A DNA stretch of 64,000 bases from Pseudomonas aeruginosa PAO1 (GTDB lineage: Bacteria > Pseudomonadota > Gammaproteobacteria > Pseudomonadales > Pseudomonadaceae): NCBI RefSeq assembly GCF_000006765.1, contig NC_002516.2; one strand, written 5' to 3'. The notes below the pieces were generated by a model. That model saw only the letters and a list, made by a program, of their open reading frames with translations. It was not told the DNA's origin and made no database searches. A program made the translations under genes and the position numbers. Below, in pieces: positions 3,614 to 50,892 of this stretch. Each line of letters starts with the position of its first letter. The first letter of the stretch is position 1.

Positions 3614-3776
3614 CGCGCCCCGGCGGCCCGGCCTCGGCCGGGTCGCCTGCGACACGGAGCGTCCCCCCATAACGACGATGCGGCGCCTGGCGACCGCGCG
3701 CGGAACCGTTTCGGCCTCTGGTCGGCAACTGCCTCAGCAACATCACAACAATGCCAATCGGCTGTGGGAGTGTTCC

Positions 3777-4835
3777 ATGTTCAAGTCCTTGCACCAGTAC
3801 GCACACGTGTTTTCCCGGTTGTCCCTGTTCGGCCTGGCGTTCGCCGCGGCGGCCCAGGCGCAGAGCCAGAGCCTGACTGTGATCTCCTTCGGCGGCGCGA
3901 CCAAGGCCGCCCAGGAACAGGCCTATTTCAAACCCTTCGAGCGAAGCGGCGGCGGGCAGGTGGTCGCCGGCGAATACAACGGCGAAATGGCCAAGGTGAA
4001 GGCCATGGTCGACGTCGGCAAGGTCAGCTGGGACGTGGTCGAGGTGGAGAGCCCCGAACTGCTCCGCGGCTGCGACGAGGGGCTGTTCGAACGCCTCGAC
4101 CCGGCGCGTTTCGGCGACCCCGCGCAGTTCGTCCCCGGCACTTTCAGCGAGTGCGGGGTGGCCACCTACGTCTGGTCGATGGTGATGGCCTACGACTCGA
4201 CGAAGCTGGCCAGGGCGCCGCAGTCCTGGGCGGATTTCTGGAACGTCCGCGAGTTCCCCGGCAAGCGTGGCCTGCGCAAGGGCGCCAAGTACACCCTGGA
4301 AGTGGCGTTGCTGGCCGACGGGGTGAAGGCGGAGGACCTCTACAAGGTACTTGCCACCCCGGAGGGGGTCAGCCGCGCCTTCGCCAAGCTCGACCAGCTC
4401 AAGCCGAACATCCAGTGGTGGGAGGCCGGCGCCCAGCCGCCGCAATGGCTGGCGGCCGGCGACGTGGTGATGAGCGCGGCCTACAACGGGCGCATCGCCG
4501 CTGCGCAGAAGGAGGGGGTGAAACTGGCCATCGTCTGGCCCGGCAGTCTCTACGATCCGGAGTACTGGGCGGTGGTGAAGGGCACGCCGAACAAGGCGCT
4601 GGCGGAGAAATTCATCGCCTTCGCCAGCCAGCCGCAGACGCAGAAGGTGTTCTCCGAGCAGATCCCCTACGGGCCGGTACACAAGGGCACCCTGGCGTTG
4701 CTGCCGAAGACGGTGCAGGAGGCGCTGCCGACCGCGCCGGCCAACCTCGAAGGCGCGCGGGCGGTGGATGCCGAGTTTTGGGTGGACCACGGCGAGGAGC
4801 TGGAACAGCGTTTCAATGCCTGGGCGGCGCGCTGA
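3777..4835 (+). CDS. Periplasmic solute-binding protein, PotD/GABA-binding family (PA0222-like)
   Basis: ATG after GGGAG; signal peptide ending AAAAQA; SFGG, WDVVEVE, AYNGR motifs. Confidence 0.85.
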   Translation: MFKSLHQYAHVFSRLSLFGLAFAAAAQAQSQSLTVISFGGATKAAQEQAYFKPFERSGGGQVVAGEYNGEMAKVKAMVDVGKVSWDVVEVESPELLRGCDEGLFERLDPARFGDPAQFVPGTFSECGVATYVWSMVMAYDSTKLARAPQSWADFWNVREFPGKRGLRKGAKYTLEVALLADGVKAEDLYKVLATPEGVSRAFAKLDQLKPNIQWWEAGAQPPQWLAAGDVVMSAAYNGRIAAAQKEGVKLAIVWPGSLYDPEYWAVVKGTPNKALAEKFIAFASQPQTQKVFSEQIPYGPVHKGTLALLPKTVQEALPTAPANLEGARAVDAEFWVDHGEELEQRFNAWAAR

Positions 4836-15688: not shown

Positions 15689-16522
15689 ATGAAGAAGATG
15701 ATGCAGGGCGCCGCCGCCCTGATCGCGCTCGTCGGCGCCGGGGAGAGCATGGCGCTGGAATGGATGAGCAACAGCGTCGGTTTCCGTTACGGCCAGCAAT
15801 TCACCAACCCGAACAACCCGGACAAGTTCGCCAAGCGCATCTACAGCTTCACCCACGCCGACGGCTATCGCTACGGCAGCAATTTCTTCAATCTCGATGT
15901 GTTCCTTTCCGACAACCGCGACCCGCGCAAGGGCACCGACCATGGTGGCAGCGAAGTCTATGCGGTCTACCGCCACCAGCTCTACGCTTCGCGGGTGTTC
16001 GACCGGCCGCTGGGCACCGGCCTGGTCAAGGACTACGCCTTCACCCTGGGCTTCGACGCCAGCCGCAACAACAACCTGGCTTCGGCCAAGAAGCGCGCCC
16101 TGGTGTTCGGCCCGACCCTCAAGTTCAACGGTCCCGGCGTGCTCGACCTGAGCCTGCTCTACTACCGCGAGAAGAACCACTTCGGCGTGCCCGGCGCGCG
16201 CCATCCCGACCACACCTTCGACACCACCTACATGCTTAACCTGACCTGGATGCGGCCGTTCAAGGTCGGCAACCATGCGGCGAAGTTCCAGGGCTTCGTC
16301 AACTACGTGGGAGATAAGGGCGAGGACTACAACGACAAGCACACCGCGGCGGAAACCCTGGTCCGCACCGCCCTGATGGTCGCCGCCCTGCCAGGCGACA
16401 AGCGCCAGCCGAACCTGTGGCTCGGCGTCGGCTACGAGTATTGGCACAACAAGTTCGGCGTCGACGGTGGCACCGGCAGCCGCACCTCGACGCCGACGTT
16501 GAATATGGAATTCACCTTCTGA
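15689..16522 (+). CDS. Outer-membrane beta-barrel, Tsx-like channel (PA0234-like)
   Basis: AGGA RBS, signal peptide, alternating amphipathic strands, C-terminal Phe (NMEFTF). Confidence 0.7.
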   Translation: MKKMMQGAAALIALVGAGESMALEWMSNSVGFRYGQQFTNPNNPDKFAKRIYSFTHADGYRYGSNFFNLDVFLSDNRDPRKGTDHGGSEVYAVYRHQLYASRVFDRPLGTGLVKDYAFTLGFDASRNNNLASAKKRALVFGPTLKFNGPGVLDLSLLYYREKNHFGVPGARHPDHTFDTTYMLNLTWMRPFKVGNHAAKFQGFVNYVGDKGEDYNDKHTAAETLVRTALMVAALPGDKRQPNLWLGVGYEYWHNKFGVDGGTGSRTSTPTLNMEFTF

Positions 16523-16536
16523 AGCGAAGCGCCGTC

Positions 16537-16955
16537 GCCCTACGCGATGCCGCCAACCCTGGGGTGGGGCGGATAACGCCACCGGCGTTATCCGCCGATA
16601 CACCGAAGCCCGGCGGCGGATAACCGCGAGCGGTTATGCGCCCTACGCGATGCCGACCCCTGGGGTAGGGCGAATAACGCCACCGGCGTTATCCGCCGAT
16701 ACACCGAAGCCCGGCGGCGGATAACCGCAAGCGGTTATGCGCCCTACGCGATGCCGACCCCTGGGGTAGGGCGAATAACGCCATCGGCGTTATCCGCCGA
16801 TACACCGAAGCCCGGCGGCGGATAACCGCGAGCGGTTATACGCCCTACGCGATGCCGACCCCTGGAGTAGGGCGAATAACGCCACCGGCGTTATCCGCCG
16901 ATACACCGAAGCCCGACGGCGGATAACCGCAAGCGGTTATGCGTCCTACGCGATG
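16537..16955. repeat. Tandem REP/BIME array: four about 101-bp units, each with two inverted GTAG-type REP palindromes
   Basis: Units start at 16537, 16640, 16741, 16842 (partial at 16943); GTAGGGCGAATAACGCC-ACC-GGCGTTATCCGCC and inverted GGCGGATAACCGC-GAG-CGGTTATGCGCCCTAC. Confidence 0.92.
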
Positions 16956-16963
16956 GGGCAGTT

Positions 16964-40383: not shown

Positions 40384-41175
40384 TCAAAACGCCCGATGCA
40401 CCGCATCGGGCGTTTTGTTTTTCAGGGCCATGTGAGGCCGCTCTGTGTTGTAGATCTGCACGGCTTCAGCAACCATCTTCCTTGCCTGCTCCAGATTTTC
40501 AGGGCTACTCAGCAGCAGCTCTGTTTTGAGGATCCCGTAGATGCGCTCAGCTAGCGCGTTCTGGTAGCAGTCATATCCGTCAGTCATCGAGCACTGGACG
40601 CCATGCCGTGCATGCAGTGACTGATACAGCGCCGAGAAATATTGAATACCGCGATCCGAGTGGTGGACCAGTGACTGGCGACGCTGCCGTTTGCGTAAGG
40701 CCTGCCTAAAGGCTTGTGCAACTGACTTGGCATGCAGGCTTTCATGCACATGGTGGCCAACAATTTTTCTGGAATACGCATCCGTTACCAGGCTTAGGTA
40801 CAGCGGGCCGCTACTGGCTGGCAGGTAAGTAATGTCCGCCGCCCAAACGTGCTCCGGTCCTGACGGGACAACCTGGTTCGGGCCTGACTTGAGTAGGTTC
40901 GGATGGCGGTAGAAGCGGTGAAAGCTTTGTGTTGTCTTGTGATACGCCCGCTTGGGCAACACCAGCAAACGGCGCTCTCCCAGGACCTGAAATAGTCGGT
41001 CTCGGCCAATTTGGAGCCGCCTATCAGGCTGGCAATGCAGCAGATAGTGCAGCTTTCGTGTGCCTAGTCGTGGCTGACGTATCCGGATTTGTTGAACAAA
41101 TTCGACAACCCGATCTGCCTGGCGTGCTTTGCTATCAGCAGCTCGATTGCGCTTGTAGTAAGCCTGTCGGCTCAT
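40384..41175 (-). CDS. IS3-family transposase OrfB (rve integrase core)
   Basis: WAADITY, DAYSRKIVG, HHSDRGIQY, NALAER..GILKTE. Confidence 0.88.
   Translation of the reverse strand: MSRQAYYKRNRAADSKARQADRVVEFVQQIRIRQPRLGTRKLHYLLHCQPDRRLQIGRDRLFQVLGERRLLVLPKRAYHKTTQSFHRFYRHPNLLKSGPNQVVPSGPEHVWAADITYLPASSGPLYLSLVTDAYSRKIVGHHVHESLHAKSVAQAFRQALRKRQRRQSLVHHSDRGIQYFSALYQSLHARHGVQCSMTDGYDCYQNALAERIYGILKTELLLSSPENLEQARKMVAEAVQIYNTERPHMALKNKTPDAVHRAF
40385..40422. terminator. 15-bp perfect hairpin with T-tract inside the 3' end of IS orfB
   Basis: CAAAACGCCCGATGC-ACC-GCATCGGGCGTTTTG followed by TTTTT. Confidence 0.65.
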
Positions 41176-49042: not shown

Positions 49043-49561
49043 TCACCCTGCCACCGGCGAGCGCCAGTCGTCGGAGCCGGAGGTGCCGGAGACTTCGTGG
49101 GTCCAGGTGATCTTGCGGTAGGTGAAGTGCACGTCTTCCAGGTGGGTGAAGTGGGCGTTGCCCGGGTCCTGGCAGTTGTGCATGTAGTCCTTGATGTCGA
49201 CGATGATCGCGTCTTCCAGGACGGTGGTGTAGTAGTGCTCCTGGGTGCCGGCGGCGGAGGTGCGGTACCACTGGATCTCGACCTTGGTCAGGCGCTCGCC
49301 GGAGGTCAGGGCGGCCAGCAGCAGCGGCGAGGCCTTGTCGAAGACCTTGGTGATGACCACCGGCTTGTGCACGCGCTGGCCGGTCGGCTGGCCGGACTGC
49401 GGGTCGCGCGGGATGATCACTTCGTGGTTGAAGCCCTGGACCATCACCTGGTCCTCGTGGCCTTCCTGATAGGTGTTGCCGACCGAGTCCTCGGTGAAGG
49501 CGCCGGCGGTGATCAGGCCCTGCTTGGTGCCGGTGATGGACATATAGGCGGGGGTTGCCAT
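49043..49561 (-). CDS. hcpC: Hcp tube protein (Hcp2 family)
   Basis: MATPAYMSITGTKQGLITAG, KVFDKASPLL, TYRKITWTH; 172 aa. Confidence 0.93.
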   Translation of the reverse strand: MATPAYMSITGTKQGLITAGAFTEDSVGNTYQEGHEDQVMVQGFNHEVIIPRDPQSGQPTGQRVHKPVVITKVFDKASPLLLAALTSGERLTKVEIQWYRTSAAGTQEHYYTTVLEDAIIVDIKDYMHNCQDPGNAHFTHLEDVHFTYRKITWTHEVSGTSGSDDWRSPVAG

Positions 49562-49619
49562 GGATACGTTCCTTGTCGTTGAAAGTGCCCAGGCGATATG
49601 CCGGGGTCACCGGTGCTAG

Positions 49620-49759
49620 ACAAGAACTGTGCCACTGGTCTTGAAACTCTTTTCCATCAAGGCGTTATTGGGGGAAACCAAAAATTCGCTGGCGATTCTC
49701 ATGGGAAGAACACTGAAAATTGCGCAACTTTTTGCGCACCGCTTGCAAAAAGTTGCGCA
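49620..49759 (-). promoter_or_regulatory. Candidate sigma54 promoter, IHF site and palindromic enhancer for hcpC-vgrG2b
   Basis: TGGCACAGTTCTTGT (49634-49620), ATCAAGGCGTTA (49656-49667), perfect 15-bp inverted repeat 49721-49735/49745-49759. Confidence 0.6.
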
Positions 49760-50040
49760 CTCTCTCGGAGCCCTTTGGGTATTTGTTCCCTAGCGTTCTA
49801 TCCACAACGTTATCAACCAAAAAGTTGCACAATGGCTTTTGGATTGTGAGGCTGAATGGTTGGAGTATTTTCTGCCTCTGCCCCTATCCAAACAACGCTT
49901 CAGCACGCGTAGTCTGATTGTCCAAACGTTCACCAAGCCCAGCCGGTACAAGCTCACCTTTCCACCGTATGCGTGACCTCTCCCTCAGCCGGTATTCCCC
50001 CAATGGGGGCGAACCGCCGTTCAAATGCGGGTGGCCGGCT

Positions 50041-50508
50041 TGAAGTCGGATAGTCCGACCTCAAAACCGGCAAATCGCCGGTTTTGGATCTCCTGCATTG
50101 CAGGCAAAGGCTCGCTGCGTTCAAGCGCAAATACGGGAATATCCCGCATTTGAAAACCCGGCTTCAAAAGTACGCAAAACGTCCTTTTGACTGCGGACGA
50201 AATTCGTCGTCAGTCGGTGTTTTGTGCGTCCGAATTTCGGACGCACAAAATCCCCCAGATTCGGGGTATTACGAGAGTCTCGTAAAACTCTCACTCCAGC
50301 CACCGGCTGAAGCCGCCACTACAAAATATTCGTAGTGAACATGCCCTGATTTTTCAGGAGATGATCGCGCGACCGTGGCCGCAATTTTGTGGAGACGGCG
50401 ACCCCGCTGAGTTACGGCCTCGGGCATTAACGTTGGAGCAACGTTGGCTAACGGTGGACTAACGTTGATCGCGTTACCGGGAAGGGGCGCATTTCAAGTG
50501 CGCCCCTT
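50041..50508. repeat. Cluster of short-centre palindromes and phased direct repeats
   Basis: At least 9 palindromes (e.g. perfect 31-mer at 50220-50250) and 4 AACGTTGG-type repeats at 50429-50468. Confidence 0.75.
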
Positions 50509-50700
50509 GGCGCGACCAGCGATGGCTCCGAACTGAGCCATGGGCTAACGCGGCGCTATCTCACAACCGCCAATGGGGGAAGTGAGGAAAATCCCACCTT
50601 GCCTGACCAATCGCCAGGGGATCGAACTTACCGGGAGCGACGCAGACCACCCGGTTGCCCTGCTGGAACTGACGACAGACATTTGAGCTGGCCGGCATAA

Positions 50701-50740
50701 AAAAGCCCCGCCTGAGCGATTCAGGACGGGGCTTTCCTTT
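50701..50740. terminator. Bidirectional terminator-like hairpin downstream of the tRNA
   Basis: AAAAGCCCCGCCTGA-GCGAT-TCAGGACGGGGCTTTCCTTT. Confidence 0.7.
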
Positions 50741-50815: not shown

Positions 50816-50892
50816 TGGCGCATCCGGCGGGATTCGAACCCACGACCCCTGCCTTCGGAGGGCAGTACTCTATCCAGCTGAGCTACGGATGC
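50816..50892 (-). tRNA. tRNA-Arg, anticodon CCG
   Basis: 77 nt GCATCCGTAGCTCAGCTGGATAGAGTACTGCCCTCCGAAGGCAGGGGTCGTGGGTTCGAATCCCGCCGGATGCGCCA; D loop, CT-CCG-AA loop, TTCGAAT, CCA end. Confidence 0.97.

Follow-up and report, generated by a model that had tools for sequence, protein, structure and literature searches.

The gap between hcpC and the tRNA-Arg(CCG) gene of Pseudomonas aeruginosa PAO1 contains a palindrome-dense stretch that is very probably an orphaned, partly deleted copy of a 1.0–1.4 kb module carried by tRNA-integrating elements of P. aeruginosa. The copy occupies positions 49986–50625 of the 64,000-nucleotide stretch of DNA analyzed here (hereafter, the window). An earlier reading of the sequence letters (the original prediction) had listed, among other possibilities, the relic of a control or replication region from a phage satellite or island. 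This proposal is strongly supported, since the stretch is homologous, in truncated form, to the gene-free module found in satellites resembling phage-inducible chromosomal islands of the capsid-forming type (cf-PICIs) and in related islands with type VI secretion cargo. On balance we lean towards a combined explanation, in which the satellite origin of the module is coupled to an operator-like role of its palindromes.

A gene-free module of tRNA-integrating elements

Homology to the module starts on the left at position 49986 and reaches about 115 nt to the right of 49995–50510, the segment delimited in the original prediction. The region 49986–50624 aligns to positions 3654–4490 of the IMG/VR contig L010 and 3516–4352 of L047, with 80–97% identity per segment, and 50064–50624 is ~80% identical to both in blastn and MAFFT alignments. 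Further module copies, from U1, L012, L027, L036 and L042, were included in the comparison. Homologues with 72–99% identity are found in IMG/VR, metagenome, NCBI and Logan contigs, and additional copies were recovered by pattern scans and by look-up via spurious open reading frames (ORFs). The most informative relatives are the IMG/VR contigs L010 and L009 and the complete genomes L047 (NQZH01000007.1, 1–10925) and L048 (CP008863.1), in which a 10.8-kb element resides at tRNA-Thr(CGT), beside pilA. The left part of this element carries genes for an integrase (404 aa), a reverse-strand product of 186–214 aa and an AlpA-like HTH_17 protein, followed by four small genes. The middle part consists of a gene for a 155-aa O-like replication initiator with four palindromic iterons, and then 1.4 kb without a called gene. 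The right part encodes HK97 capsid, S78 protease, portal, HNH, TerS, TerL, connector and head-closure proteins and ends with a terminator and the tRNA gene. In the intact satellites, the module thus has the replication gene and its iterons on one side and the capsid operon on the other.

Judged by its gene content, the 10.8-kb element is a satellite of the capsid-forming type: L010 and L047 share with the described cf-PICIs (Alqurainy et al., 10.1101/2022.09.08.507074) the gene set and order, a size of ~11 kb and integration at a tRNA gene. By contrast, the window retains the non-coding module only and lacks every gene that defines such islands. Capsid, protease, portal, HNH, TerS and TerL genes, all present in the relatives L010, L035 and L047, are absent from its 64 kb. 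A term search of the cf-PICI preprint (10.1101/2022.09.08.507074) returned no mention of non-coding or intergenic sequence. In the assembly collection, 92 blocks have an index entry for the 93-aa connector of the intact satellite. The gene-free stretch makes up 1.4 kb (13%) of the 10.8-kb satellite and contains 9.2 palindromes per kb, versus 0.5–1.5 per kb in its own coding regions. To our knowledge, no gene-free, palindrome-dense spacer is known for cf-PICIs.

The module is also present in elements of a different kind. The 16-kb record vB_Pae_U1 (U1), filed as a phage, corresponds to an island with an integrase, a cox-like gene, an O-like rep, and Rhs and VgrG-type genes, and its last 1.2 kb align to window positions 50062–50686 at ~79% identity. 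Pattern scans of viral contigs with three conserved blocks returned only the same two elements, and eight loci encoding Rep proteins with 49–75% identity had no homologous hairpin region. An exact pattern of 27 specified bases from the repeat block (window and six metagenome contigs) had no match in a one-genome-per-species collection; apparently, either the species representative lacks the module or the stretch is masked in that collection.

The gap itself measures 1254 nt, from hcp (49043–49561, − strand) to tRNA-Arg(CCG) (50816–50892, − strand), and the palindromic region has a G+C content of 55%, versus 67% across the window. All eleven palindromes of the original prediction were found, with coordinates off by 1–3 nt at most, and two were added to the list (50092–50104 and 50520–50543). 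When strong palindromes are defined by at least 8 matched pairs, at most one mismatch and a loop of no more than 6 nt, 49995–50510 yields nine matches with eight distinct centers. One thousand dinucleotide-preserving shuffles of the same segment yield 0.39 ± 0.64 (maximum 3), confirming the excess of palindromes over shuffled sequence. The palindromes are the following:

49997–50009: CCCCC-AAT-GGGGG, member of the recurrent family CCnCC-AAT-GGn'GG
50040–50064: TTGAAGTCGGA-TAG-TCCGACCTCAA, 11-nt arms with one mismatch
50062–50086: CAAAACCGGC-AAATC-GCCGGTTTTG, perfect 10-nt arms
50092–50104: CCTGCA-T-TGCAGG, arms invariant across all variants
50128–50152: CAAATACGGGA-ATA-TCCCGCATTTG, 11-nt arms with one mismatch, inside the insertion 50110–50160
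50164–50190: TCAAAAGTACG-CAAAA-CGTCCTTTTGA, 11-nt arms with one mismatch, kept in all variants
50189–50215: GACTGCGGACGAA-A-TTCGTCGTCAGTC (CGAAATTCG family), 13-nt arms with two mismatches
50220–50250: TTTTGTGCGTCCGAA-T-TTCGGACGCACAAAA, perfect 15-nt arms, 1-nt center
50247–50268: imperfect palindrome
50266–50288: palindrome containing perfect 8-nt arms at 50269–50285
50317–50337: palindrome; relatives with ACG..CGT versus ACA..TGT form a compensated pair
50482–50508: GGGGCGCATTTCAAGTGCGCCCC, 12 of 13 positions paired, overlying weak rha-like coding remnants (GKGRISSAPLGATSDG)
50520–50543: palindrome, likewise overlying weak rha-like coding remnants

Several of these vary between lineages. Relatives of the first palindrome, CCACC..GGTGG or CCTCC..GGAGG, are found at the equivalent and at other positions of the module. 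The palindrome at 50040–50064 corresponds to GCCGGAT-C-ATCCGGC in other variants, a compensated change, and L036 carries a compensated variant, GGGTCGCA..TGCGACCC, of the palindromes in 50482–50543. The insertion 50110–50160 is confined to the lineage of the window, the alignments showing 16 unrelated bases at this place in other lineages. At the alignment position of 50220–50250, other lineages have a different palindrome, and the U1 copy of the window palindrome lies ~130 nt further to the right.

Conserved boxes, symmetry and phage-related pieces

From left to right, the module consists of the hairpin part (window 49986–50340), two tandem boxes (50340–50398), a variable segment, four TAACGkTGG repeats (50428–50470), more palindromes and, in undeleted copies only, ~190 nt resembling the att-proximal region of temperate phages. 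Besides the palindromes, it contains the following recurrent elements:

50016–50035, − strand: copy of the CGCATTTsAA motif, CCCGCATTTGAA
50340–50367 and 50379–50398, + strand: tandem boxes CATGCCCTGATTTTTCAGGAGATGATCG and CCGCAATTTTGTGGAGACGG, matching the 'NF-E' segment of phage rha in sense orientation
50428–50470, + strand: four direct repeats TAACGkTGG with 10–11-nt spacing

Further copies of CGCATTTsAA are found at 50145 and 50488 (both + strand), which gives three copies within 480 nt and leaves the rest of the 64 kb without any. In a pattern search, the motif families CCnCCAATGGnGG, CGCATTTsAA and TAACGkTGG were confined to the module in the window, L010 and U1. The alignments show that 50340–50398 is almost invariant among module variants, and the TAACGkTGG block (~42 nt) is invariant in the first four variants aligned and nearly unchanged in later ones. 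The TAACGkTGG repeats were considered as Rep iterons and dropped from consideration, the true iterons being located at the rep genes of L010 (GTGTTCAGAAAGTGAACAC, four copies at the rep 3′ end) and U1 (GGTACAGAAACTGTACC, four copies at rep). Moreover, the four repeats of the window are identical in elements with different Rep proteins.

The symmetry was analyzed in an alignment of seven sequences from six lineages, with the stem structure derived from the same sequences. Stem cells are paired in 82% of cases, versus 35–40% when the partners are slid by 1–3 columns. Changes on both sides of a stem with pairing retained affect 12 pairs, versus 2–4 in the slid controls and 7.0 ± 1.9 in shuffles, of which 4 out of 500 reach 12. 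Examples of such compensation include CCCCC..GGGGG, CCACC..GGTGG and CCTCC..GGAGG; GTCGGA..TCCGAC versus GCCGGA..TCCGGC; ACG..CGT versus ACA..TGT; and GGGGCGCA..TGCGCCCC versus GGGTCGCA..TGCGACCC. In the hairpin part, stems diverge by 17% and spacers by 27%. Hairpins are also gained and lost as whole units, such that one position of the alignment is occupied by three unrelated palindromes in different lineages. Stem mismatches comprise 74 G:T and 77 A:C cells, in 34 and 32 columns, respectively; this parity argues against an RNA read from one strand, which should tolerate G:U but not A:C. Collectively, the data point to symmetry kept at the level of double-stranded DNA, rather than of an RNA transcribed from one strand.

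Temperate P. aeruginosa phages with HK97-type heads, including vB_Pae_CF53a, Pacha_bin_1 and the prophage OQ658367, share several separate short pieces with the module. A 45-nt piece (95.6% identity, database E value of 2e-10), corresponding to the L010 version of the 50040–50064 palindrome plus flanks, is intergenic in the phages, lying between divergent accessory genes ~1.4 kb from attR. Positions 50062–50088 are identical (27/27) to a part of a Bro-N antirepressor-type gene of phages Alize and vB_Pae_CF53a, which adjoins a gene for a Mnt/Arc-type regulator. A 20-nt piece (20/20) is found inside rha of vB_Pae_CF53a, and 63–190 nt next to attR of temperate phages match at 86–89% identity. vB_Pae_CF53a alone has pieces of 45, 27 and 20 nt matching the window or L010 copies and of 63 nt matching the U1 copy, distributed over a moron-flanking intergenic region, the vicinity of the att-proximal end, and the bro and rha genes. 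Box 1 matches rha of vB_Pae_CF3a, a member of a second phage group, at 25/28 positions in the window and 28/29 in U1. All matches to phage genes are in sense orientation on the + strand of the module. The link of the relatives to a helper, consisting of short sequences shared with HK97-like, HNH-type temperate phages, is circumstantial.

The right half of the stretch in the window, ~50340–50580, looks like a decayed rha-type antirepressor gene, judging from the collinear but frame-shifting pieces of Rha similarity found with tblastn. These are weak (E values of 0.07–2.6 in a tiny database) and comprise, in order, GKRTQNVV, FGRAHD-HALNFAEMI, RARNFEETV and GKGRISSAPLGATSDG, with HALNF.EMI and R.RNF.ET at the level of the boxes. 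Pfam, including Phage_pRha, gave no match to the four largest ORFs of the window region. In the phages, rha has a corresponding location, following the replication genes and preceding the late genes. The original prediction had set against its own view a decayed coding region of a known gene with no conservation of symmetry. The first half of this probably applies to ~50340–50580, which aligns as apparently decayed rha-like coding sequence; the second does not, the symmetry being conserved across relatives. In the rha-bearing phage vB_Pae_CF3a (L038), 540 nt of non-coding DNA upstream of rha separate this gene from those on the replication side and include a ~96-nt near-perfect palindrome with ~45-nt arms (1167–1262).

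The core of the 31-nt palindrome (50220–50250) is also found in four ORF6N/ORF6C antirepressor genes of metagenomic phage contigs from IMG/VR, where it encodes CASE[IF]RTH. The sites are located in unrelated phages (L002, 2003–2031 and 2719–2747; L003, 11643–11669; L004, 451–477; L005, 1811–1837); inside the genes, the core is in frame and is read as CASE[IF]RTH on the gene strand, the other strand being nearly the same. In L002, two palindromes have the same outer half-sites, TTTGTGCG..CGCACAAA, one located in non-coding DNA upstream of the ORF6N operon and the other within it. The same contig has the core TGCGGACGAAATTCGTC, which is similar to the palindrome at 50189–50215. By a rough count, the database-wide significance of the ORF6N core match is marginal, and the match may reflect common descent, a shared site or chance. 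With the ORF6N and Bro-N proteins as queries, tblastn matched the palindromes only and detected no extended homology.

Possible roles of the palindromes

In a live satellite, the palindromes may form a cluster of operator-like protein-binding sites, a role that we propose tentatively. The putative sites would lie in a control region between the replication and late (capsid) operons, beside divergently transcribed accessory genes, and some of them could have been copied from, or exchanged with, temperate phages of the helper type. The copy in the window is most likely an inert, orphaned relic, because none of the regulators or late genes of the element are present there. Consistent with the presence of operator-like sites are the confinement of the motif families to the module, the pieces shared with phages and the paired half-site palindromes of L002. 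Satellites are known to possess control regions responsive to their helpers, such as Psid/PLL of P4 with Ogr and Cox of P2, and temperate phages have antirepressor control loci, such as immI of P22 (Mnt/Arc operators, sar) and c4-ant of P1. The module resembles these systems, as a lead only, in its location between replication and late genes, in its phased repeats reminiscent of Cox boxes and in sharing palindromes with phage bro, rha and ORF6N loci beside Mnt/Arc-type regulators. It differs from them in having no recognized activator, repressor, promoter or antisense RNA and in that several of the shared pieces are inside phage coding sequence.

A number of observations weigh against protein-binding sites. 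The phage copies of three pieces are within coding genes, which would be unusual for operators. Between two satellites with 92–95% identity in the flanking gene blocks, the identity of the hairpin part drops to 72%, about as expected of unconstrained DNA. The 82% of pairs still intact is near the level to be expected if perfect ancestral palindromes had decayed neutrally. Strong palindromes are few in the U1 variant, 4 versus ~0.8 in shuffles (maximum 4). By our own tally, CCnCC..GGn'GG copies within one element differ at n and are still complementary in 11 of 16 cases, which fits base pairing or copying better than recognition by a single protein. The excess of covariation is modest, and it comes from 6–7 lineages with the structure taken from the same sequences. 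The multi-operator array or decoy of the original prediction is a possible reading: the DNA-level symmetry, the module-specific motif families and the palindromes common to phage antirepressor loci speak for it, but most of the data would be accounted for just as well if the palindromes had arisen by mutation.

Nearly as likely as operator-like sites, and hence possible, is that the stretch represents non-functional debris, i.e., decayed coding DNA of rha and its neighbors, in which palindromes were made or re-perfected by fold-back or template-switch copying and which survives as filler or through deletion not yet having occurred. Template switching at quasi-palindromes predicts perfect arms, very short centers, apparent compensation free of selection, lack of strand bias and new palindromes. 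Perfect arms with 1-nt centers, as seen here, are the expected yield of fold-back copying, and the lineage-specific palindromes, the different palindromes at one position, the unbiased stem mismatches and the modest covariation fall in line with it. So do the near-unconstrained rate at which the hairpin part evolves and the much less palindromic state already reached by the U1 variant. Possible signs of coding decay are also present. The rha-like fragments are collinear yet frame-broken, and spurious long ORFs across the module in relatives encode proteins of only 52–67% identity, versus 82–94% for the DNA, indicating shifting frames. In agreement with the original prediction, which had found no convincing ORF, the four largest local ORFs (37–83 aa) have no match in Pfam or PHROGs, and the same is true of the ORFs of the U1 module. 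On the other hand, a packaged satellite of 10.8 kb retains the 1.4-kb stretch in many genomes, and neither the three kinds of rearrangement nor the spread over three tRNA sites has removed the module. Conservation is higher in stems than in spacers, some blocks hardly vary at all, the motif families recur, and pieces are still 95–100% identical to phages. Furthermore, template switching is a mutational process, not an element, and leaves the retention of the module, its invariant blocks and its recurring motifs unexplained. In the tightly size-limited satellite, the gene-free stretch is about ten times as dense in palindromes as its surroundings and appears to exchange short pieces with temperate phages. 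If non-functional, it would be a clean natural example of palindrome birth and maintenance through template switching; if functional, it would represent a type of satellite control region not described before.

An extension of the operator-like role, in which the hairpin module would be the helper-sensing device of the Pseudomonas capsid-forming satellite, appears unlikely. Under this scenario, a fast-evolving cassette array of palindromes and 20–45-nt tags derived from helper bro, rha, ORF6N and moron-control regions would bind or titrate helper regulators, acting either as operators in the DNA or, on the sense strand, as decoys for antisense control, and thereby time the late operon or trigger the helper. 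If this were true, vgrG2b-hcpC and the other orphan type VI islands of P. aeruginosa would be domesticated remains of such satellites.

It is rather improbable that the hairpins act as structured RNA, whether as a transcribed, long untranslated spacer between rep and the capsid genes or as a small or antisense RNA. Such an RNA could block Rho loading, stabilize or process the message, or pair with helper bro and rha transcripts or with their antisense regulators. In the satellite, the module does lie between co-oriented genes, the hairpins tile an untranslated region back to back, the phage-gene matches are all sense on its + strand, and antirepressor genes are classically under the control of small antisense RNAs, such as sar of P22 and c4 of P1. 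Hairpins without U-tails would not terminate transcription, and the absence of U-tails reported in the original prediction is corroborated: 4 terminator-like sites were detected, versus 2.5 ± 1.5 in shuffles, none of them at the main palindromes. However, the original suggestion of an unannotated structured RNA was not supported. A scan of the region against Rfam 15 with permissive thresholds matched the tRNA alone, the best other scores reaching 11–27 bits against cut-offs of 33–70, and the intact module of the relatives was also without a match. The similar numbers of G:U-type and A:C-type mismatches speak against selection on a one-strand RNA, which should favor G:U, and many centers are of 1 nt, making poor RNA loops. 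The promoter scan of the module revealed no sigma-70-like site and no signal above shuffles, and the covariation term of RNAalifold is unfavorable overall (+7.2 kcal/mol). A literature search returned nothing relevant on a small RNA at PA0263.

A host function, with the stretch being either a co-opted regulatory or insulating region upstream of hcpC-vgrG2b or an ordinary chromosomal cluster of repetitive extragenic palindromic (REP) sequences or bacterial interspersed mosaic elements (BIMEs), is still harder to credit. The start of leftward type VI cargo is in every case adjacent to the module, which in L036 begins only ~100 nt from the start codon. In the window, however, it starts 425 nt upstream of hcpC, from which it is separated by a 270-nt hcp-proximal segment shared with other P. 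aeruginosa records, and in satellites the same module precedes capsid genes. With REPs and BIMEs it has in common short GC-armed palindromes that are clustered in extragenic DNA and lack U-tails. Unlike REPs, which form one family with tens to hundreds of copies per genome, the module consists of about a dozen different palindromes confined to a mobile element, and a pattern search of the 64 kb with the core 50224–50246 and the three motif families detected copies in the module only. True REP arrays do exist elsewhere in the window: the tandem array at 16520–16960, downstream of an ORF ending at 16522, consists of about four 120-nt units with palindromes GGCGGATAACGC..GCGTTATCCGCC and is the only other equally palindrome-dense spot.

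Least plausible among these alternatives is a part in replication, the hairpins belonging to the satellite origin as sites of single-strand initiation or primosome assembly or as cruciforms beside the iterons. The hairpin part begins ~40 nt past the last Rep iteron of the intact satellite, and lambda-type origins also have a palindrome beside their iterons. The satellites resemble lambda-type origins in having an O-like initiator with four 17–19-bp palindromic iterons at the 3′ end of its gene. However, such iterons are absent from the window, and the window palindromes are all mutually different and unlinked to iterons in related islands. In U1, the four Rep iterons are at rep, ~10 kb from the module with cargo in between, which implies that the module is not the origin. 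Furthermore, L010 and L009 have Rep proteins that are 98% identical and hairpin parts that are 72% identical, the module variants do not track Rep or its iterons, and Rep homologues of 50–75% identity occur without such a region. An attP arm was rejected because the hairpins lie 350–1400 nt from the core and similarity to a phage att-proximal region is limited to the far right part, which the window has lost; a cos site is unlikely with HNH and TerS adjacent elsewhere in the element, and the cf-PICI preprint (10.1101/2022.09.08.507074) gives no cos position.

Origin of the vgrG2b-hcpC island and its sister islands

The right end of the island in the window has the following features:

50619–50625: deletion junction with microhomology GGATCGA; ~0.5 kb of U1, L027 and L036 is absent here
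50621–50686, + strand: remnant of the 83-aa island ORF (last 21 codons and stop)
50700–50740: intrinsic terminator hairpin, tRNA-proximal end of the element
50816–50892, − strand: tRNA-Arg(CCG), integration site

The second group of module-bearing elements has an ORF of 80–83 aa in place of the capsid block and type VI cargo directly to the left of the module. In these elements, the module adjoins three tRNA genes, tRNA-Thr(CGT), tRNA-Arg(CCT) and tRNA-Arg(CCG), with Rhs, PAAR or VgrG cargo on its left. Islands with Rhs cargo are found at tRNA-Thr (U1, L021, L024, L027–L034); the pilA-adjacent tRNA-Thr(CGT) site occupied by the intact satellite harbors a Rhs-cargo island with the same ends in other strains (L027). 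A PAAR toxin gene is the cargo in L036, and a module copy resides at tRNA-Arg(CCT) in L031. The window-type island at tRNA-Arg(CCG) is represented by L022, L023, L025, L026 and L044–L046, which are ~99% identical. The terminator and the tRNA-proximal end are common to all element types, the intact satellite and the islands at other tRNA genes carrying the same sequence as the 50700–50740 terminator.

These observations suggest that the vgrG2b-hcpC island is a decayed satellite derivative that lost the integrase, replication and capsid genes, because the same module flanks VgrG, Rhs and PAAR cargo at three tRNA genes; the case is made from shared architecture. From the IS3-type transposase ORF to the tRNA, there are only type VI genes and the non-coding module, and no integrase, AlpA-type regulator or replication gene was found between the transposase ORF (40384–41175) and the tRNA. 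The 3′ end of tRNA-Arg(CCG) faces the island, marking it as the integration site. The ~0.5-kb deletion at GGATCGA removed all of the 83-aa ORF except the last 21 codons. With neither an integrase remnant nor a repeat of the tRNA 3′ end in the window, the left boundary of the island is undefined. The presence of the vgrG2b-hcpC island varies among isolates (PMC9846239). A literature search returned nothing relevant on satellites with type VI cargo. The comparison provides a concrete origin for the well-studied orphan type VI island at tRNA-Arg, together with its sister Rhs and PAAR islands, and suggests that satellites provide a chassis for the acquisition, and subsequent fixation, of type VI effectors.

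The 80–83-aa ORF (L001, 15936–16187; L036, 5603–5854) is conserved at the tRNA-proximal end of the cargo islands and absent from the intact satellite. It belongs to no Pfam family, has marginal matches to PHROG families of unknown function and has no phage homologue besides the one in U1. On the far side of the type VI gene block, the IS3-family transposase ORF at 40384–41175 encodes 263 aa. Between hcp and the module, the hcp-proximal upstream segment 49562–49985, outside the satellite module, contains a perfect 15-nt inverted repeat (49721–49735/49745–49759) and repeated TTGCGCAC/AAAGTTGC(G/A)CA motifs. This segment is probably an upstream region common to hcp paralogues, and its part 49562–49831 is 97–98% identical to two P. 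aeruginosa records filed as plasmids.

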